A DNA stretch of 64,000 nt from Chara braunii (Eukaryota; Plantae; Charophyceae). A model generated the notes under the pieces. It made no database searches, was not told the origin of the DNA, and saw nothing but the letters and a program-made list of their open reading frames with translations. Location of the stretch: contig BFEA01000027.1 of assembly GCA_003427395.1 (NCBI GenBank), forward strand, positions 1,925,086 through 1,989,085, in the 5' to 3' direction. The stretch's first letter is position 1. The number at the start of each line of letters is the position of its first letter. The translations under genes and the position numbers were made by a program. Positions 17,834-59,444 of the stretch are shown here, one piece after another.

Positions 17834-17993
17834 TAGCCATTCGGAAAGCCTTCAAAAACGGGGGGCGCCCAAATGTGAAGTTCTTGGAAAAAAAAAAGCT
17901 TGCCGTGCAGTGCAGTGCCTCCAGGCCTAGGTGTACTGGTGGGAAGGGAAACACTCACCATTGAGCAGCATAACCTGACAGATCGATGAGTAA

Positions 17994-19317
17994 GGGTCTC
18001 GTTAGACACTCCTAAAAGTGCCTGTTTTTAGGATTGCGTCTTGGTTGCGCACAATCCTAAATCCAATTTTGAGATCGAAAATGTGAGAACGGCGGTAGGA
18101 CGAGTCCTAAAGGATTGTAAAGGTATAAAAGATGTGTATTCACAATGGAAAAGGTAAGGATTGAGGGCAAAGAAATATCTGAGCTTGTGCAACAGGTCAT
18201 GGAAACAGAAATAAGATCTCAATGGGATAAGACTAAATCTAGGCTTAATACACTCCAGAAAAAACAGGATATCAAGAAAGGTATTCAGAATTTCACAAAG
18301 GACTGGCTGGGTGGGTGAATCTGCAAGAAGGAAATTGGGAAACATGGAGTGGCCAGGGGGGGAAGAAGATGAGATAAATCTCAAAAGAGATTATGGGATT
18401 ACCTTCCTGGCCTGGTTTGATGTACAGCCAGGAGCTATCTTGAGGTCTCCAGAAGCCTTTCCAGACCCCTTTCCTATTTCTGAGCTTGCTTTGGTGGATC
18501 TTCATTGGTATGGAGGGGGGAGGGATAAAAGGTTTTATTCTCTCATCATTTTGACAGCAAACAAGTGAGTTTGGTATAAGCAAGAGAGGATGAATGGGTA
18601 TTAGGGGTTAGACAGGAGGGTGGGCTGCTAAAATTTACATAGTCATCTGGCGGTCAGATTCTGGCTGAAGAGGCAGCTATTCTTTTGTCACACTTCCCTT
18701 TGATCAAATGTTTAAATATACTGTAAATGAGGAACGCTGGACCCGGTTTCCAGCAGGTGCAGTCCCCACCAATAGAATGGAGCCAGGGGCAGGGGGTTAG
18801 TGGTGGATGCTATTATCATCATCACTAACAACCAGAGTCCGGATAAAGAAAAAAAGAAAAAGAAAAAAAGAGTCCTAAAGGATTCAAGTTTAGGATTCCC
18901 CAGGCAAAATTGTCCTAAATTTTCCAGTAGCCCCTGACCTACTGAAAAATTTAGGATTCCCGCGTTTCACGGACTCATTGCGTCGCGCGCATGGCACCGT
19001 CGACACGGAGTTGCTGGTGCAGAAGCGGTCCGTCGGGTCAGTGGTCGGACATCGGAGGTTTTCTGCGGGTCCACGAGGGCAACGGCCACGAACGGTAGCC
19101 GTTGGCGGGGATTGGACGGACATTGGCAGGAATGGACGGACATTGGCGACGCGGCTGCGTATACGCATATGAAAACCGGCCGCGGGAGACCTTTTAGGAC
19201 GAATCCTAAAAGATGATTTTTAGGCTTGCGTGTAACGACGCCGCACAAAATCCTAAAAATCCTTTCGGAAGAGTCCTAAAATTTTTTGGATTCTTTTAGG
19301 AGTGTCTATCGAGACCC
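17994..19317. mobile_element. Non-autonomous deletion derivative of the 49768-59117 Harbinger, with a nested LINE fragment
   Basis: TIR GGGTCTCGTTAGACACTCCTAAAAG at both ends, flanks TAA/TAT. The left and right arms match 49768-50105 and 58935-59117. Confidence 0.9.
18117..18869 (+). mobile_element. 5'-truncated LINE with 15-bp TSD, inserted into the Harbinger MITE
   Basis: GAGTCCTAAAGGATT at 18102-18116 and 18870-18884. ORF2 C-terminal motif WFDVQP...FPDPFP, shared 3' module at 18731-18783, A-rich tail. Confidence 0.9.
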
Positions 19318-19422
19318 TATTGCCAAAACGCAAAGAGACCCAACAATCAAATCCACAATGACGGGGATAAAAGCAAGAACAGAGACAAGAGGATAGGAAG
19401 GGGGAAGAAGAAAGAGAAACAG

Positions 19423-47096: not shown

Positions 47097-50000
47097 CTTC
47101 CGACAATAAGGACCTTTCTTCGTTGTCGTTGGGCTTTTTTCTTTTTTATTCACTGTCGATTCGGCTACTGTGAGGAACAAGCCCTCAAGGGGCCCTATCA
47201 GACATCACACATTGTTCTGGGCTAAGGCCCCCAGCAAGCCAAGTGCCCGCCCTAAGTGAAGGCGGGCCTGAATATTCGTCGAAGGCAAAATTTGACATTT
47301 CCATAAGTGGGTATTCAGGCTCTCGCAGCACGCCAGTTGGTTGGGAAGACGCGTGAGCCTCACATTGCGGCGTCATACAGTTGGCCCAGGGCTTGACAGT
47401 TGCGCCTGGGCACACATACACAAAGCAGGGCCAATACATTGGGAAGCAGGCTTTAGGCCTTTGCAAAAGCAGTAGTGCCAACCCACCTGCCTGGGAGCCC
47501 TGCACAGATGCAGCAAACAGCCCAAGTCCGGAGACTCAGGCCGTGCCTAACTGCAAAGGGCCCAGGCCCTCAACTGTAGTCTCGGGCCTGGGCGCAGGGT
47601 CTGGGACCCAGCCGGAAGCTACTGGAAACTTCCAGCCAGGCCACACGCAGCATCCAGGAGGCTGCCACTTCCACAAAAGGAATGAGGCAGCGCAGGCCAG
47701 GCATTCTGGCCAGTGCTGGTATTGCGGAAGTGCTGCTGCGCTCTCGCTTGATGCTGCGCTGCTGCCAAGGGCGCTGACAGGGCGTGAGAGGTGTTGTGGG
47801 GTGCTGCAGGGCAGCAGGGCGCAGGCGGCCATAGCCGGGCTGCTGGGCGCCAGGGGGTAATGCGGGATGATCTGGTGGTCTTCAGGGAAGGAGGCGCTGT
47901 GTGGGGTAATCAAGGTCTGATTGAGGGTGACGAGATACGTACCTGGTACATGAAGAGAGGTCAGCGATGGTGTTGGCAGTCATGTACATTGGTCTTCGTG
48001 AGTCGAAGTCATCCTGTTGCGGGAACCAGCTGTAGGTAGGATAGTCTGGTAGAGTAGGCTGGGCGCTGAGCGCCAGAAAGAGCAGAGCGACTTTGGATAC
48101 TGTGTTGGTGTGGCCTACGGGCTTGAACATTGGCTCATTACTTCATTGTATTGCTCTCTATATGGATGGTTTACTCGGTGCATTTGTACTCTCTGCTTGG
48201 GACACGACTACTTGGTCAGCTGTGTGATTTCCCAACTTGGTTTTATGTATATCGCTCACAGTCATATTCCTTGCACTACCATTTTCTTTTTTTGTCTTCT
48301 TGTTGTTTTTTTTTACGGCCCTTTTCTTTTCCCGGCACGAAAAGTGAAAAAATGTACCCTGAGCTGGGAAGGAGGGAACGCAGCCCGATGAAGCCCTGTG
48401 CTACCCGGCGTACTCGCTGTCCGGAGACGGCCGTGCTCTGCGTCGGCAGCGAGGGTGGGATTCAGGGTGTGGGGTGGAACGATGTTTTCCTCGATGATCT
48501 CTAGGTTCGGCCATCGCCCTCAGCTCCGACAAGGAGCTGTGTCTCCCTGTCGAATACCAGAGAGCAGGGCGATTCCAACTCCTACAACAGACATCCTACA
48601 ACAGACTCTACAAGAGTCAAGTAACAAGTGCAGTGTGAACACGACGAAGGGAGAGTGAGTCCAGTACGGGACAGCGGGCACATCCAACAGCCGCACCTCT
48701 GGAGGCAGTGGGTGGGCAGCCGGTGGTGGTGGGACTGGTGTTGGGAGTTGGGAGGAGCAGGTGAGAACTACTGTTGACTATCTCTACTGGGAGCGTGAAG
48801 ACCTGAAGCTCTACGGGCGGCGGCGCCACCAATGGGAGTGGGAGTTCCTCTGGTGGTGGTGGGAGCGACTCAGTTGGAATTAAGGGCGCTGAGTGTTAAC
48901 TAAGCCACTCTCTAGCACGAAATATTTAGAGTGCATTAACCCAGCCATATTTTTTTACTCCTTATGAGTGGCTTACTTCATGACTATCGTGCACGATAAT
49001 ATCTGGAAATACTGTCACCCTCTGTCAAGCTCCTGCTGCTATGTGCTTTGGTGTCACTGGCGGCAATCTTGATTGTATTTAGTCATTGTACTTAGTCATT
49101 AGTATTCCGTATCTGGGCATATGTTTTGTTTGGTGCACTCTTCCTTTGTTTTCTTCTATGCAAAACCTCGTGTAGTGCAGTATTTTGCTCATACTCTGCA
49201 TTGGGTCGTAAGGTTGGATTAAGGCAACCCTCCATCCCTATTCCCATATCAGAGCCCTAGTATAACATAGTAATTCCAAAATTGCGTGTAACGTTTATCT
49301 TACCGAATCTTACCTGATCTAGAGGCTATTTCAAGGAATCTTCACTGTGGGTTCTCGGCTTTAGTTTGGTTGGTAAATGTCGAAGGTTGGGGGTTGTTCG
49401 TAGAAGGCAACGGAACTATTGGAGGTGGTGGGAGACGTAATAGTTGTGGGAACGTTGCCGACCTACTAGGGCACAATTGAATAGCATTTAGCTGTCAAGA
49501 GAGCATACTTGGGTTGTGCCCATTCAGATCTAGGGTGCCTGGGAGATGGCAGTTCCTACAGAGGTCCAAGGGTGCAAGGTGGGAAACCTCGTCACGGCAA
49601 CCCAGGCTCCCCACGACTACTAGCTGCTCTGTCGGGCCAGTATTGGTGCTGTATTCCGTTGGTGGAAATTACTTGATCTGCTGTTGGGCGAATCCTTTTC
49701 TTCAACTCTCCAGATTCCTTTCTAGTTCACAATCTGTTATTTGGCTTTGTTGAGTAGGGTTTAGTTAGGGTCTCGTTACACACTCCTAAAAGTGCCTGTT
49801 TTTAGGATTGCGTCTTCGTTGCACGCAATCCTAAATCCAATTTCGAGATCGAAAATGTGAAAACGGTGTTAGGACGAGTCCTAAAGGATTTAGGATTCCC
49901 CAGGCAAAATCGTCCTAAATTTTCCAGTAGCCCCCGACCTACTGAAAAATTTAGGATTCCCGCGTTTCACAGACTCGTTGCGTCGCGCGCATGGCCCCGT

Positions 50001-50549
50001 CGACACGGGGTTGCTGGTCCAGGAGCGGTCCGTCGGGTGGGTGGTCGAACATCGGAGGTTTTCTGCGGGTCGACGCCGACAACGGCCACCAACGGTAGCC
50101 GTTGGCCGACGGGGTGGAGCGAGGGGGGCCGAGCGTGGGGGGGCGGGCGTCCGTAGTGGACCGTTGGCTCGGTTGCGGGTAGCGGAGGACGACGACGACG
50201 TGCGTGGGACGACATACGGAGGCGCTTCCGGCAGTGCGCGGGCGGCAACGGTCGATTTTTGAATCGCAGGCAGGCACCTTTGTCGTCTACTCTGGTGGTT
50301 GTCGGCATATGAAGGTCCAGCGGCCCTATCCACCGGCATGCCAAAAGAAACTTCTGCAGTAGTCGCGTGGAAGGGTGGATGTCTGCGATTGAATTGATGG
50401 CAGACATGCACAGGAGATTGCCTCTGCTGGTGCTCGCTGTGGTCGTCTTCCTCTTTGTCGTCTTCCTCCACGTGTGTTTGTCGTGTCGGCCGTGGAGGCA
50501 ACGTCGCAAGCGGAGGGCATCAACAAAACGGCAGGGAGGGGAACGTTCG

Positions 50550-52236
50550 ATGGCGGGCATGCAGGCACGCGCGGTTCTGGCTGCAGGTCAGGGAAGAAGA
50601 CGACCTGCAACGGCGAAGCCTCGATGGCGGTACGACCCGTCCATGTACACCAATCTAGAGTCATGGGTGACGCCACTGCCCCCGTCGGACGAGGAGCCGG
50701 AGATGGAAGAACTTCCAACGTTGCCTCTCGCCAGCGGGTCGACGCAGTTGTTGTCACAGACGGTGCGAGCAGGTGGGTCAGCTAGCAACGAAGGCGGCGA
50801 GTTCACCTCACTCCTGCACCAAGGCTTGGGAGACGACGACGACGGAGGACTTGATCTCAGGTTCGGGTTGTGTTCTGGCGGCGCTAGGGAGGCGAGCCGT
50901 ACGTTCATCATCGACGCCGATCCTTCGCCACGTGGCCTTCAACATGTTGGAAGTGATCATACGGAGCAGTCCACACTTCGTGGTGGTGCGTCCGTTACTG
51001 GCGGTGTCGGGCCATTGGCAGCAGCCCGGCAGCATGGATCGACTGCACCGTCCACCGATCGATTGACAAGTACCTGGCCCGCACGCACTGGAGTCGCATC
51101 CGGGTCCCTGCGCATCAGCGGTGCACGTCCTTCGATGTCCAACCCGACCAGAGGGACGAGGGCGCCCGCATACCACCGGCGCGTCCAAGACCTGCTGTGG
51201 AGAACATCACACGAGGAGTCTCAAACATGCGGGCACACAGCGATGGCGGCGACGACGATGGCGGTGGCGGTGACGATGCCGACGAAGGATTGAGGGAGGA
51301 CGTGGAAGCAAGGGACGACGATGACGACATTCCTATTCGGCCTTTGGGGAAGACGGGTGGGAGGGGGAAAGGACGTTGCAGAGGTGCTGTTCGTGGTCGA
51401 TCCGTTGGGTGTGGCGGCAGAGGTGGAGTCAGCGACGACGGCGGGAAGTCTGCGACGTACTGGTCTCCGGAAGACCAAATGCTCCTGGTCAGATGCAAGC
51501 GGGAGCAAGAGATGCACCTCGCCGGGCTGAGTCAAAATTACGGGCGGATGCGGACCAAGGAGTGGAAGTGGGACGACATTGCGAAGCGCATGGCGAACGC
51601 GGGGAGGCCTAAAGACGCCGACGACTGCATGAAGAAGTGGGACAATCTCTTCCAAAACTACAAGAAGATACAGAGGTTTCAGAATGCCAGCGACCAGGCA
51701 GATTTCTTCAGGCTATCGAATGAAGAAAGGAAGGAGCACAACTTCAAGTTTCGGATGGAGAGGGTGTTGTACAACGAGATCCACGCAGGCATCCTAGGGA
51801 ACCATACAATTTTCCCTCCCAACGTCGCCGACACCGGAAATCCGGAAGGGGTGCAGCTGCCAGTCAAGGAGCCGTTGGTGGGGAGTCTGTCGGTAGCGAG
51901 GCTGGTGGTGACGGATGCCCTGAAGAATGTTCTTCTGCGAGGGACTCCGACAACAACGCAGGCAGGGGGGTTGGAGGCGGGAAGCGGAAGAATGCGCGTC
52001 AACAGGCGTTGGAGTCGATCGCTGATGTCATGGACCGCCATGGCGAACTGATGTCGGGGACGATCGATTCGTCTAGCAAGCGGCAATGCAGCATATTCAC
52101 GAGGCAATGCGATATACTAGAGCAGGAATTTGCAGTCCAAAAAGCGAACTATGTGGCGTCCGATGAGACGCAGAGGATGATGTGCCACGCGCTTATGGAG
52201 ATCGCTGCTGCCATCCGTGGTCGGTCGCCTATGTAG
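50550..52236 (+). pseudogene. Harbinger Myb/SANT (trihelix) DNA-binding protein, two frameshifts
   Basis: WSPEDQMLLV...KWDDIAKRMANAGRPKDADDCMKKWDNLFQNYKKI, with a C-terminal coiled coil at 52009-52236. Frameshifts near 51160 and 51860. Confidence 0.9.
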
Positions 52237-52348
52237 GCCGTTCGATCGTGTGTTGGTTGAAGTCCAACATTGCGTTCGTAGATAGCTTAATTTTTTATTT
52301 TATTTTTTTTCACGGATTCTTCTATCGAGGAGCACGGTGGTAGACCGC

Positions 52349-52481
<133 letters not shown>

Positions 52482-53669
52482 NNNNNNNNNNNNNNNNNNN
52501 NNNNNNNNNNNNNNNNNNNNNNNNNNNNNNNNNNNNNNNNNNNNNNNNNNNNNNNNNNNNNNNNNNNNNNNNNNNNNNNNNNNNNNNNNNNNNNNNNNNN
52601 NNNNNNNNNNNNNNNNNNNNNNNNNNNNNNNNNNNNNNNNNNNNNNNNNNNNNNNNNNNNNNNNNNNNNNNNNNNNNNNNNNNNNNNNNNNNNNNNNNNN
52701 NNNNNNNNNNNNNNNNNNNNNNNNNNNNNNNNNNNNNNNNNNNNNNNNNNNNNNNNNNNNNNNNNNNNNNNNNNNNNNNNNNNNNNNNNNNNNNNNNNNN
52801 NNNNNNNNNNNNNNNNNNNNNNNNNNNNNNNNNNNNNNNNNNNNNNNNNNNNNNNNNNNNNNNNNNAGGGGTAGGCGCGATGGGGTGGCCAGGGGTGAAG
52901 TTGGATTCTCTTACTTTTGGTCCCTGGCGAGTGAATTGACGCGCGTCGCCAGGGACGTCGAAGGGTCTTTTCGCGCCTTGGGGAGGATCATAATGACACG
53001 GCAGGATAGGCATGGTGGTCTCACGTGGCACCGTTGACGATGCCTTTTCTCGCCACAGAGAAGCGACGTCGTGGGCGGTCCATCTGCTGCGTTAACTTCA
53101 GTCGTGTGCATCCCAACCTGCATGAATGTCGTTCGCACTAGGGTGTCTACATTACAGAAGCCCGTCGCGCCTACTGCACACCGACTGCGACAACACAAGA
53201 GCAATACAAGCTTGCTCGCCGCGAATAAATGTCGCCTGCTCCCCACGAACATCTTCAGTGTCGCGGAGGACCACCGTCGATGCCTTTGTAGCCATCTCGT
53301 CACGCGGAGGATCTTCGCTGGAGTCGCCGTCCTTCTGTCGTACATGTGGACATCCGCCGTCAATCATTCCGCCGCGGAGCACTCTCACCGTCGCTCTTTT
53401 GTTCTTCTCGTCGTCAATCGTTTTGCCGCGGAGCACTCTCGCCGAGGTCGTCATCCTTCTGTCGTGCACGTGTACGTCGTCGTCTACTTCCCGCGGAGGA
53501 GAGATCTTCAGCGTCGTGGGGGGCCAGGGGCATTCGTCCTCGCCAGGCTGCAGCAACACGGGAGACAATTTTCTCGCCAGATCGGTGGGACTTCAAACGA
53601 CGGTCGACGAAGCACTTCCCGCTCATCCGATCGGACCGCCAAGCTCGTCTGCAGAGGTCCCGACGAAGC

Positions 53670-55850
53670 ATGTCTACGCGAGGGAGCGACCGTGGTAAGA
53701 AGCGCGACGACATCCCCAACGACAGCCAACTTGAAGGGCAGGGAAGAGGTCGGTGGCATGTCCCGAAGGCGAAGAGGGCGCGTTTGGATGATGCGTCAGC
53801 AAGCGTGCCTTCGCGTCGAGCACAAGGTTGGGCGGCAGTAGCGGAAGGGGACTACGACGACGACTCCACGAGGGAGGCACACGTGGTTAACCAGGGGTGT
53901 TATTTTCGACGAATTTCGCATCGAATTGCACTGAAATTGTCATATTATGCTGATTTTGTGCTTTTTTTTTTGTTTTTCTGTTTGTGTGATATATATGTGT
54001 TTTAGGGTACATCATGTGTGCAGTTTTGACATGTTTGGATCAGTAATGAAAAAGTTGGCATTTTGTTGAATTTGCTGGACGCTTCATTTTGACTCGGACA
54101 GTGTCTTTGTGTTAGGGTTTCATAGTGTTTTTTTGTTTTTTTTTTCATTTTTTTTTGCCTGTTCCCTTTATGGATGTTTGCACTATGGTCTCACATCGTT
54201 TGCTTTTAAAAATTTTCATGAAATTCGCACCGCAATTGCCAATGAAAACAACGAATATTTGGGCCCCCGTTAACCGTCTCTCGAGGGAGGAAGAGCAGGC
54301 AGAGGCGACCGTGTCTGCAATACGGGAAAGCGCTCGGCAACGCTCTTTTGATCAGACCACTTCGAAGAGGATGCTCACCCCTCCGCCCGAGGCGCAGCAA
54401 CTACGTGCCCGCGACACGCGGACAGAGAAGGTTGTCGTCGTCAATCTGGGCGGCGATCTTGGAGAAACGTCGCCTGCGCACTCTTGCACAAGGCACCCCA
54501 ATGCCGGCGGCAACGACACGCGCTGCAGTAGACAAAAGGTGACTTACGGGTAGACAGCCCGCCACGCCATCTCAGCCACGTCAGCGCAACCCGGGTGCTG
54601 ACGGAGAGTCTGCCCAGTGCGGTGGGGGGGGGGAAGTCGTGGCAGACGCGCGAGCAGTTGGGAGCGAGCCGACAGGTGCTGCGGGTGTGGGTGCTTCAGA
54701 CGCTGTGGCCCCTGCTGCGACGGCGAGAGAGGAGGCAACAGTTGTGGCGACGGCGAGAGAGGAGGCAACAGTTGTGGCGACGGCGAGAGAGGAGGCGCGT
54801 GGCGAGAACAAAATTGATCGGGACGGCGGCGAGGCCGGTTCAAGCCGGGTACGTAGGGGAGTGATGACGAAAGACCTCGTCGATCGTGCCGTGCTTTGGG
54901 TTGATGACAAAGCTTTCTGGACGACGGGGGAGGGGCGAAGACTATACAACATCGTCCACGAAACGAGAGAGTACTTTATCGCCATCGCCAGTGGCCTTCC
55001 AGCACCTGTCGTCCCTCTGAGCGTCGTCCTGCTCAAATCCAGCACGAAGGTAGCCAGGATCACCGACCCATCACAGCTGCAGCAAGCGATCTCCTGTGCG
55101 GCTGCAGTGGAGAACATTGCTCTACGCATCTTGCACGGCTGGATATTCAAGTCCGGGAACCTCCCAAGGGGATACAATGTGGCTTTCCAGTACTCGCTCG
55201 AGTCCGTTGCGACGGACATTGCTCGTGCAATGTGGTACGGCGAGGAGTGGTGCAACGTCGTCAGTGCGGCGGTATGCACGCACACGATAGATCTGTCTGT
55301 GGACTTGCCACTATGGTTCGTCGGCGCCAACATCGAGGACAGACCTGAGGACGACGACATGGCGGCGTACCAGGAGTCCACCATCATCTGCGTCTCGCAT
55401 GCATTCCGCTCGGCGGTGCAAATGGGTGTGCACATCGACGGCGACTTCATCTCGTACAACCGTCTCTGTCAGGTGGATGACTGCTTCAGGCTTTTGTTGG
55501 CGACGTGCATGTGGATAATACGCATGGCAGGAGACGATCCGCACAGCCACTACGAAGCTTTCTGCTTCGCGGACCTGGTGGTGAAGCCCACACTCATCGC
55601 ATCCATGCATCGGTCCTTCGATCATCGACGATTCGTCGTCCCTGCCGTAAAAGTCGTCACGGAGAGGCTCGGGAAGGCAAAAGCTACGTTTGGAGAGTAC
55701 CCCGACTGCATCCCTGGATGAGCACCCTGCGGCATTGGTTTCAGGCACAACGCGGGCATAACGGGGCTGGAGGATGCGAAGAAGCTAGATTGGTTGGGTT
55801 CGGCCCACCCCGATGATGACAACAACGACGATGGAAAAGATGACGCGTAG
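53670..55850 (+). pseudogene. Third Harbinger gene of unknown function (about 590 aa reconstructed)
   Basis: ATG at 53670 (MSTRGSDRGKKR...KAKRARLD). Reads in frame across the excised 53878-54282 MITE, then one frameshift near 54460 and in-frame TGAs at 54540 and 55719. Includes the 360-aa ORF 54639-55721 and ends at TAG 55848-55850. Confidence 0.75.
53878..54282. mobile_element. AT-rich hAT-like MITE with 8-bp TSD
   Basis: GAGGGAGG at 53870-53877 and 54283-54290. Imperfect TIRs with core GGTTAAC..GGGG. Removing it restores the reading frame. Confidence 0.75.
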
Positions 55851-56589
55851 GGGGTGGGGGGAGTGGGGGGGTGCACGATGGAAAAGATGACGCGTGGGGG
55901 GTGGGGGTGACGGGGGGGGACGCGGCGCTTGTGTGAACGAGGGCGCATGTACACGTGGGTGGTCGTGATGGGCTTCACTGTGGATGGAACATTGTGCAGT
56001 GCGCACCTGTTTAATGTGTCGGTCGGAGGGATTGCCCAGAATCGTCGTCGGTTGTGCAGATGTTTAGTGTGTCGGTTGTGGCATAACGACGGGTTGATTG
56101 ATTTCAATCGTGTGTTTTGCGTGCAGGTCAGGGCTGTTTAGCGTGTCCGTCGTTGGAGCCGACGACGGGTTGATTGATTTGATTCCTGTATTGTGTTTTT
56201 ATCATCGCAGTTCGCTGCGCAAGAACTTCAGAGCGCTTTTAGCGCACCCTTTTTTTTCCTGTCATGTGTCCGTTGTTCTCGTCTCTTCGCTGGAATGATT
56301 CATAGATGATCGCCTCATATGCATGCACACAATCCATGTTTGCCTTTCTCTTTTTTGTATTTTTCTTCGTTAACTTACATTATGCATGTTTTATCAATGA
56401 TTTCAACAGCCATGTTTGACGTCCCACCACGAAACCATTTATGACAAACGAATTGGAGAGACACACAAAATCCAGGTTATACCACACGAAACCATTCATA
56501 ATAAACGAATTGGAGAGACACACACAAAAAAATTAAAAAACATTGTAGAAATTCAAAAAAAAAAAAAAAAAAAAAATCTTCTAAGTAGC

Positions 56590-56682
56590 AAATCCGGATA
56601 TCTAACAGACCAATTTTATCCGGAATTTTCAATCCGGATGAAATTTCCGGATTAATTCCGGATATGGAAAATCCGGCCCTGA
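56590..56682. repeat. Cluster of TCCGGA palindromes ending in CCGGCCCTG (probable TE subterminal region)
   Basis: Five TCCGGA copies plus one TCCGG in about 90 bp. Confidence 0.5.
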
Positions 56683-57148
56683 AAAACGATTCATGGCAAA
56701 ACAATTTCAAGACACACACATAAAAAGATGGAAAAAAAAAAAAAAAAAAAAAAACGGNNNNNNNNNNNNNNNNNNNNNNNNNNNNNNNNNNNNNNNNNNN
56801 NNNNNNNNNNNNNNNNNNNNNNNNNNNNNNNNNNNNNNNNNNNNNNNNNNNNNNNNNNNNNNNNNNNNNNNNNNNNNNNNNNNNNNNNNNNNNNNNNNNN
56901 NNNNNNNNNNNNNNNNNNNNNNNNNNNNNNNNNNNNNNNNNNNNNNNNNNNNNNNNNNNNNNNNNNNNNNNNNNNNNNNNNNNNNNNNNNNNNNNNNNNN
57001 NNNNNNNNNNNNNNNNNNNNNNNNNNNNNNNNNNNNNNNNNNNNNNNNNNNNNNNNNNNNNNNNNNNNNNNNNNNNNNNNNNNNNNNNNNNNNNNNNNNN
57101 NNNNNNNNNNNNNNNNNNNNNNNNNNNNNNNNNNNNNTCCGCACGGTC

Positions 57149-58492
57149 CTACATCAAAGCTAGGCGGTCTCGAAGTGCATCCCGCAACAAGTCCCCGTCG
57201 ACGTTCATGCTCCGTCGCCGCCCGCCCGCGCCATTCCTTACGATGCCCAAGTCCACTCTACGCCGAACACCATTCGCATCCACCTCCCACAAAAGGTTCT
57301 CGTTGAAGTCGATCCCCTCGTCCTCGTTGAGGAGGATGTTGTGGAGAGTGCACACGGCCACGAATTGTTGTGTCAAGGTCTCCAGATTCGTCTTGTGGGT
57401 GCGCAAGAACAGACGCCACATGCACTTCAGTCGCCCGAATGCCCTCTCCACACATCCCCGCGCCACCTTCTGCCGTGTGTCGAAGCGCTCCTCGTCAGGA
57501 CCTCGGTCGATTCCTCCGTACGGTTGCACGATCCATGGACAAGCAACTGGATAACCGTTGTCGCCCAGCAGGTAACCTCGCGTGACAACACTGTGCGGCA
57601 GATTCTCCAGAGGTGCGTCAAACAGCTCGCCAGTTTATGCACGCCTCCACAAGTGGGAATTGTGCAAGACACGGACATCGTGCACATTTTCCGAGTATCC
57701 GACGTGGACGTCGAGGATCCGCAGATCCAAATCCACCACCACCTGCGCCTGCACGGAGAACTTCTATTTTCGGTCGTAGTAGTTGGTCGACGGTGCACCG
57801 GCAAGCTTGTCAATGTAGATGTGTGTACAGTCGATTGCGCCGAAGCAGTTTGGGAAACCCTTCTCACGAAAAGCACACAGAATCTGCGCACGTCTACGGC
57901 CCACTGGCCACTTTATCGCATCGGGGTACGCCTCCAGCAGCGCCGAAGTGACGTCGCGGACGGCCTGCAGTCCAGTTGCCTTGCCGATGCCGAATGCTGA
58001 TGTACCGCTCTCGTACGTCTCTCCGGACGCCCACCTGTACAACGCAAAAGCGATCACCAACTCCACTGGCAATGGCATCCTGTAGTGCGTGACCTTCTTC
58101 TCCACGTACGCGGCGCACGCGGCTTAGGCGGCTATGGTCTGGGTGAACATGGGCATTGACATGCACAACTTCTGCAGGTAGTACTCGTCCGTCGCGTCCT
58201 CACACAGACGGAGGTCCTCCCATGTTCCGCCAGTCCGTCGTCTAATCCACCAACGTGGGGTCTGCCGCGGGAAAATGCCAGACGACAGCACGACACACAA
58301 CTGGACGACTGCCTCACACGTGGCCACGCAATCCGGCGCTTCGGCAACGCTCTGCAACAACGCTCTTCGTTTGCGGAGCTGCATCACCATGTAGTGTGAG
58401 GACGACGACATGTTGCTCATCGTGTTGACGATGACGACAGTCACCGCCATCGCCACCTCGTCGATACCGTGCCCGCAGCCGCGAACGTCCAT
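57149..58492 (-). pseudogene. PIF/Harbinger DDE transposase (DDE_Tnp_4/HARBI1-like), disrupted
   Basis: HTH region ALYRWASGETY...FGIGKAT; catalytic motifs GAIDCTHI, VHDVRVL, YLLGDNGYP, VERAFGRLKCMW, CTLHN. Premature TAA at 58124 and frameshifts. Confidence 0.95.
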
Positions 58493-59444
58493 CTCTGACA
58501 ATCGTTCCGTGTCTACAGCGTGATTCCTGCCACAGCCGCCTAAGACACGTGCGTTGATCAACCCTGCCGCAGGAGACCACGCACGCTGGAGCCGAAGATG
58601 CGCCCGCTGCTGTACGTTGCCACAGGAGATGACGCACGTCGGAGCCCAAGACGCGCCTGCTGCTCTACGCTCCCACAGGACAGTACGCACGCCGGAGTTG
58701 AAGATGCGCCTTGCAGGAAGATGTGCCCGCTGCTCACGACTTGCGTAGACTCGAAAGATGGACACCCACGCCGAACGGTTCGCCAGCGCTGTCTTTTCTA
58801 CGTCACACGCGTCGCTTGGCCGTCCTCCCCCCCCCCCACCATGCGTCCTCGAAGTTCTGGGTGACCGCGCTTTTCACCAACCTGTCCTCACCCGCCCAAG
58901 GGCCACCGCAGTGTGTACCACGGACACCAGCCAGGAATGGACGAAAATCGGCAGCGCGGCTGCGTATACGAATTTACGGCCACGGGAGACCTTTTAGGAC
59001 GAACCCTAAAAGATAATTTTTAGGATTGCGTGTAACGACGCCGCATGAAATCCTAAAAAACATTTAGGACTCGTCCTAAAAATTTTAGGATTCTTTTAGG
59101 AGTGTCTAACGAGACCCTTATACCATGACTATTATAATTTCAAATGGCGGTTTGCCGTTTTCTGGCCATCTGCATAGGCTAGACTTTAGGCTTGCTACAG
59201 ATTTTTCGAACATGGATTTTGAATTAGTTACAGTTTAAGGGTGTTGTAGATTTAGACATTTAAGATTACAATTCCATAGGGATAGCTGGTTTCTCAGCTC
59301 TAGTGCTTCACGCTCGAAAATGCATTTGAAATCGTTTTAGGTTGCCGGATAGGTATTAAGACCTTTTTACTGCGCTTCAAGGGAATTTTTTCTTGAGAAG
59401 CTTCTTTGAGATAACAAAGTGAGAAAATGGGACGCTGGACCCAG

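Follow-up and report, generated by a model that had tools for sequence, protein, structure and literature searches.

What happens when a transposon of a well-known two-gene type appears to carry a third gene? Among cut-and-paste transposons, PIF/Harbinger is the textbook case of a system with two proteins: the canonical examples, Harbinger3_DR and Ping/Pong, encode a DDE transposase and a Myb/SANT-trihelix protein, both of which have repeatedly been domesticated (HARBI1/NAIF1; ALP1 and relatives). Charophytes are close algal relatives of land plants, and the genome of Chara is very large and rich in transposable elements (TEs). Within a 64,000-nt stretch of the Chara braunii genome, hereafter the window, a PIF/Harbinger element harbors a further open reading frame, ORF3, between its Myb gene and its transposase, and the question is whether this frame belongs to the element or merely ended up inside it. 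In our reading, the window probably contains a defunct three-gene PIF/Harbinger transposon, with ORF3 as its pseudogenised third gene. What appears to be new here is a PIF/Harbinger with a third conserved gene, predicted to encode an orphan, all-helical and nuclear-looking protein.

The element spans positions 49768-59117 of the window. Its 25-nt terminal inverted repeats (TIRs) match at 24 of 25 positions, with a single mismatch, and the TTA triplet read on both flanks represents a 3-bp target-site duplication (Table 1). The same Harbinger family is also represented at 17991-19318 by a 1.3-kb non-autonomous derivative with an internal deletion, which has kept its TIRs without any coding sequence, and consists of two subterminal regions only, which are 86-93% identical to 49763-50106 and 58932-59118. 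The ends shared with this derivative fix the termini of the element independently, and the TIR- and duplication-bounded unit put forward in the initial annotation is thereby borne out. The target duplication of the derivative itself is imperfect, with TAA at its left flank and TAT at its right. It is the sole other copy of the element within the 64 kb and lacks ORF3, of which no second copy was found in the window. Between the TIRs, the gene order is Myb-like gene (+), ORF3 (+) and DDE_Tnp_4 transposase (-). ORF3 was first described as co-oriented within the element, and this holds for the Myb gene only, which lies on the same strand, and not for the transposase, which lies on the opposite strand and is convergent with ORF3. 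Two assembly gaps are present as well: a long (TG)n microsatellite (52351-52481) enters an N gap at 52482-52866, between the Myb gene and ORF3, and a second N gap, at 56758-57137, is found close to the transposase stop, on its 3' side, after an AT-rich stretch in which a direct repeat with 58-bp spacing occurs (56424-56528).

Table 1. Coordinates of the features of the Harbinger element, in positions of the window
Feature	Position	Strand	Evidence and remarks
Left target-site duplication TTA	49765..49767	.	Sequence read; same triplet at 59118-59120
Left TIR, 25 nt, begins GGGTCTCGTTA	49768..49792	+	Sequence read; blastn; terminus shared with the deletion derivative
Myb/SANT-like (trihelix) gene	51122..52236	+	Pfam and tblastn; one frameshift near 51862-51877
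ORF3 piece 1	53670..53876	+	Frame 3; P0002 residues 1-67; start MSTRG, bipartite NLS-like basic clusters GKKR ... PKAKRAR
Nested 404-bp AT-rich non-autonomous MITE-like insertion disrupting ORF3	53878..54281	.	Repeat search; missing from homologous proteins
ORF3 piece 2	54290..54460	+	Frame 2; tblastn 54272-54466 = P0002 residues 62-126; ends at frameshift
ORF3 piece 3	54459..55850	+	Frame 3; tblastn 54459-55811 = P0002 residues 128-568, 72% identity
30-bp tandem repeat, 2.7 copies, encoding TAREEATVVA repeats	54717..54796	+	TRF; fewer copies in aligned relatives
Predicted all-alpha globular ORF3 domain, about 280 aa, 12-13 helices	54855..55690	+	AlphaFold2; open frame unbroken in the window copy
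DDE_Tnp_4 (PIF/Harbinger) transposase gene	57149..58765	-	Pfam and three-frame translation; single frame
Right TIR	59093..59117	-	Sequence read; blastn
Right target-site duplication TTA	59118..59120	.	Sequence read

ORF3 (53670-55850, + strand) is the disrupted remnant of a gene for a protein of about 580 aa, and is colinear from end to end with intact C. braunii proteins such as P0002 (580 aa), which tblastn places onto the window in three colinear pieces covering residues 1-568. The intactness of such relatives is judged on automated gene models, in which predicted introns could conceal lesions. The first two pieces are separated by the nested insertion, on either side of which the 9 bp CGAGGGAGG occur as a direct repeat without mismatch (53869-53877 and 54282-54290, spacing 413). 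This 9-bp target duplication suggests that the insertion may be a Mutator-type MITE. Its inverted termini are weak (GGTTAACCAGGG / CCCCCGTTAACC) and lie a few bases inside the ends, and no further copy of it was found within the window. Taking out the insertion along with one copy of the repeat restores the frame, just as the initial annotation had joined ORF3 in frame by excising a nested MITE. The remaining lesions, one frameshift and two in-frame TGAs, are also the ones it had listed, and could be located through alignment with P0002: the frameshift at about 54455-54466, where a frame +2 piece stands between frame +3 pieces (tblastn), and the TGAs at 54540-54542 and 55719-55721. The natural stop, a TAG at 55848-55850, is found at the normal stop position of the family. 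Furthermore, the frame had been called intronless, and the tblastn alignments of the window copy with the predicted proteins indeed show no gaps of intron size, while the three TAREEA repeats reported at the same time correspond to the 30-bp tandem array. The third piece comprises the remainder of the disordered N-half, the helical C-domain and a conserved acidic tail. Over the last ORF3 codons and the stop lies a 47-bp tandem duplication (55828-55919; 1.9 copies, 91% match), as a result of which a further copy of the sequence for the C-terminal ...GKDDA end lies just 3' of ORF3.

The two other genes can be recognised by their domains. Myb_DNA-bind_4 (PF13837) is detected on 51197-52048 (+) with an E-value of 1.4e-08 and 35.4 bits against a cut-off of 27, and Myb-bearing Chara proteins align by tblastn to 51122-51862 in one frame and to 51871-52218 in another. 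DDE_Tnp_4 (PF13359) is detected on 57152-57529 (-) with an E-value of 7.4e-06 and 26.1 bits against a cut-off of 24.8, and three-frame translation places the transposase motifs GAIDCTH, LGDNGYP and ERAFGRLK all in one frame, which is interrupted by three premature stops (58126-58124, 57766-57764 and 57637-57635). As such, all features that define PIF/Harbinger are present, namely a DDE_Tnp_4 transposase, a Myb/SANT-trihelix gene, and TIRs with a TTA duplication. The lesions per gene are comparable in number, with two stops, a frameshift and an insertion in ORF3, three stops in the transposase and one frameshift in the Myb gene, which agrees with the earlier estimate that ORF3 is decayed about as much as the core genes.

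Is ORF3 peculiar to this one copy? The initial annotation had reckoned with the possibility that sister copies lack it, which would have spoken against a native gene. Instead, the 360-aa open frame at 54639-55718 matched 77 proteins in a word search, all of them C. braunii entries named 'hypothetical protein CBR_g...' with 36-85% identity, and an HMM search of 1.84 billion cluster representatives returned 149 hits. Several of the relatives are about 580 aa in length and begin with MS(T/A)RG...GKKR. Of the representatives, 20 were looked up, nine of them from among the 15 weakest (P0189-P0203), and these belong to C. braunii, bar one spurious match, a scallop ankyrin that was rejected as a relative since its matches in the HMM search are those of an 18-residue repeat. 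No homologue outside C. braunii was found in the 1.84 billion representatives where checked, nor in the viral and metagenome contig collections, and in the collections searched the family has thus far been seen only in C. braunii.

The relatives also carry information on the company that ORF3 keeps. Among 203 family-related proteins that were fetched, 181 match the C-domain of the window ORF3, 63 match the window Myb protein, and 53 match both, with identities of 33-91% to the window Myb gene and 24-94% to the window ORF3. The Myb part is N-terminal to the ORF3 part in every one of these 53 gene models (Pfam check on long models). In a maximum-likelihood tree built from 61 near-complete C-domains, three clades are resolved with 100/100 support, each of which includes Myb-fused models; the nearest relative of the window ORF3 in this tree, P0079 (87%), is itself Myb-fused. 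Moreover, over 27 loci the pairwise distances between Myb parts are correlated with those between ORF3 parts (Mantel r 0.63, permutation p 0.0005). Linkage across the family was scored by these public Myb-ORF3 gene models, and adjacency to the transposase by the window element alone. Judged from protein sequences, these comparisons show that ORF3 has accompanied the Myb gene since before the split of the three clades. At P0095, P0098, P0103, P0112, P0027 and P0075, ORF3 is close to that of the window (63-75%) and the Myb part is distant (36-45%); there may have been module exchange between Harbinger subfamilies at P0095/P0098/P0103-type loci, or different Myb segments may have been compared. 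For most other loci, the similarities of Myb and ORF3 to the window track each other. Many of the Chara 'hypothetical proteins' are in fact chimeric TE annotations: the gene model of P0081 fuses ORF3 to a reverse transcriptase, that of P0090 fuses it to a TRM1-type tRNA methyltransferase and Myb, and P0195 carries the UniRef name of a HAT C-terminal dimerisation domain protein.

So what kind of protein does ORF3 encode? In an AlphaFold2 model of P0002, made with the family alignment, residues 1-248 are disordered, residues 250-525 are all-helical with a pLDDT of 80-95, and the tail is again disordered. The window domain (54837-55718) models like that of P0002, with a mean pLDDT of 80.5 and a pTM of 0.60. 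The architecture proposed from the bare sequence, a disordered N-half and a globular C-domain of some 300 aa, is matched by the predicted all-helical domain of about 280 aa. The tail is acidic, with a pI of about 4.1-4.5, and the C-domain has a clade-dependent pI of about 5.8-9.4 and is not markedly basic, for which reason direct DNA binding is not favoured.

As in the first reading of the sequence, this domain was assigned to no family, and none of our searches assigned it to a fold either. Pfam returned zero families for the three ORF3 pieces at E-values up to 0.1, and thus no match to TE accessory-type domains (e.g. TnpA-type, plant mobile domain, VANC-type DUF); the ORF3 profile reached a best E-value of 0.92 against PDB sequences; and a search of the ESM Atlas gave no usable match. 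With Foldseek, run with full-length and domain models against PDB, the best E-value for the C-domain was 0.089, and 0.39 against BFVD. Foldseek matches to prenyl/terpene synthases are noise, with E-values of about 1, TM-scores of 0.1-0.18 and an rmsd of 16-20 Å. A wide search with VIA-align, in two runs, gave best Z-scores of 9.0-9.7 for designed helical repeats that cover about one third of the domain, compared to a noise level of about 13 for helical bundles with this tool; the match with a Z-score of 9.0 covers 111 of the 294 residues of the domain model.

Conservation is unevenly distributed over the protein. Between clades, identity is 0.17-0.23 for the N-half, 0.36-0.44 for the helical C-domain and 0.39-0.45 for the tail, taken as the last 55 residues, meaning that the disordered N-half is conserved about half as well as the domain and the tail. 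All clades have kept the start, the basic clusters and a tail motif (YIPxWA ... DWLGxGPP, followed by the acidic end). In the youngest pairs, the ratio of N-half to C-domain divergence is mostly 0.9-1.4, with one pair at 2.1 and a bin mean of 1.40 (there are few close pairs), and it rises to about 2 at intermediate depth. This shift from about equal divergence in young pairs to a twofold difference deeper in the tree fits a scenario in which individual copies would have decayed neutrally after insertion, and the active lineages would have been under purifying selection on domain and tail. Constraint is here judged from protein-level proxies only, with the other copies taken as protein sequences; neutral decay would not produce a conservation pattern that is specific to domains.

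Taken together, the Myb-ORF3 models in three clades, the co-variation of distances and the domain-specific conservation argue for a native third gene rather than a nested element or a recent capture, and we consider it very probable that ORF3 is native to the element and has been under selection as such. This is also what the initial annotation had proposed when it called ORF3 a native accessory gene and not a captured fragment. We must however take into account that the same-strand adjacency of the Myb gene and ORF3, and the joining of both parts into one protein in 53 gene models, could mean that ORF3 is the downstream part of a single Myb-ORF3 transcription unit that yields a long fusion or alternatively spliced products, much like TnpA and TnpD of En/Spm are made from one transcript. 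Some models have an in-frame spacer upstream of the ORF3 start, and the 52993-53692 spacer is coding in others. Yet the three clades share a methionine, at one and the same position, that is followed by S-x-R-G and a basic cluster and is where many models begin; the Myb gene, for its part, has a conserved C-terminal segment of its own, with a stop at 52236, which is followed by a weakly coding spacer of about 1.4 kb that includes the microsatellite. Given as well that automated models of TEs often join neighbours, as the reverse transcriptase and tRNA methyltransferase fusions in the same set illustrate, we regard a single unit as improbable.

A different origin, in which one Harbinger lineage captured a host gene or gene fragment (transduplication) that has since been carried along passively without a role for the element, is what one might suspect from the known ability of DNA transposons to capture host sequences and from the lack of any transposon-typical Pfam domain in ORF3; an orphan gene specific to Chara, captured very long ago, would even be compatible with the protein data. 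Against this, the searches that reached beyond C. braunii, in the cluster representatives where checked and in metagenome and viral contigs, gave no homologue, and ORF3 is complete, with its conserved start, domain and tail, instead of a fragment. It is also next to the Myb gene in each of the three clades, the two diverge together, and the conservation of ORF3 follows the domains, where a passive passenger would be expected to decay and to vanish from most lineages. Such a capture is therefore very improbable in our estimation. We give hardly any credence to the idea, raised by the initial annotation as a way in which its reading could fail, that ORF3 is part of another transposon nested within the Harbinger, with termini perhaps in the N gaps. 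These two gaps do flank the ORF3 region, and nested insertions are common in this stretch, the 404-bp insertion within ORF3 being one of them. The order of Myb and then ORF3 on one strand nonetheless recurs across the 53 models and the three clades, and an element nested by chance would neither be inherited nor diverge in step with the Myb gene; nor does ORF3 have a transposase, integrase or reverse transcriptase domain according to Pfam.

Harbingers normally encode two proteins that are both required, of which the Myb-like protein mediates nuclear import of the transposase and binding to the TIRs (PMC9392472). The Chara family resembles the canonical elements in its DDE_Tnp_4 transposase, its Myb_DNA-bind_4 protein, its short TIRs and its 3-bp TTA duplication, but differs by a further conserved gene, about 580 codons long, located between the two; an architecture of two genes only is thus not what is found, in this copy or in relatives from all three clades. 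Our literature search found no three-gene Harbinger or Harbinger accessory protein of the ORF3 kind; a match to an already described one would, according to the initial annotation, have counted against its reading. Lineage-specific accessory proteins are known from other DNA transposons (PMC13547354, PMC5735166), and as a class these evolve faster and have predicted contacts with many host proteins, including importins (PMC13547354). VANC of VANDAL21, for instance, is a sequence-specific anti-silencing factor (PMC5735166). VANB and VANC of VANDAL21 (Mutator), TnpA of En/Spm and MURB of MuDR are like ORF3 in being an extra, fast-evolving and taxonomically restricted protein beside the transposase; they differ in belonging to Mutator or CACTA elements and not to Harbinger, and ORF3 has no sequence similarity to them (Pfam, zero families at E-values up to 0.1). 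At most, we infer an analogy in function.

How, then, could ORF3 serve the element? The predicted protein has a conserved start with bipartite NLS-like clusters, about 200 aa of fast-evolving disorder, the helical domain and a disordered tail. With these parts it would be expected to enter the nucleus and to act in trans through protein-protein contacts, where the helical domain may provide a scaffold and the tail a docking motif. ORF3 could then be a cofactor of the Myb-transposase machinery, involved in its assembly, stabilisation or targeting. This is the most economical role and, among those considered, the one that seems most likely to us, and we put it forward tentatively. Alternatively, ORF3 might be an antagonist of host silencing. 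In that case the protein would use its own NLS to reach the nucleus, where it would disarm or hijack a component of the chromatin or silencing apparatus of Chara. That ORF3 is a new factor of this host-directed kind, with a helical fold not seen before, and by analogy the Harbinger counterpart of VANC-type anti-silencing proteins, we deem unlikely.

The core of the cytomegalovirus protein IE1, a nuclear antagonist of intrinsic silencing, is an elongated all-helical bundle that resembles the second half of the modelled ORF3 domain. IE1 cores recur in both VIA-align runs with Z-scores of 5.9-8.8, as in 6tgz (Z 8.5, 104 residues), 4wic (Z 8.2, 105 residues) and 6th1 (Z 5.9, 91 residues), at an rmsd of 2.9-3.6 Å. 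However, these matches cover about one third of the ORF3 domain at 5-9% identity, their Z-scores are below the noise level of about 13 and tied with those of designed helical repeats, and Foldseek gave nothing below an E-value of 0.089. The resemblance may as such serve as a lead, and is not to be taken as a relationship.

For the annotation of the C. braunii genome, these findings explain well over a hundred 'hypothetical proteins', together with the Myb-fusion models, as transposon genes. For the PIF/Harbinger superfamily, an orphan third protein that is kept across three subfamilies suggests that in this charophyte there is an extra need, either in transposition or in the evasion of host control. 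If a partner of ORF3 were found, this would provide a testable case of DNA transposons gaining accessory functions, along with a new helical domain. Should ORF3 turn out to counteract silencing, this would help to account for the success of this Harbinger family in the Chara genome.
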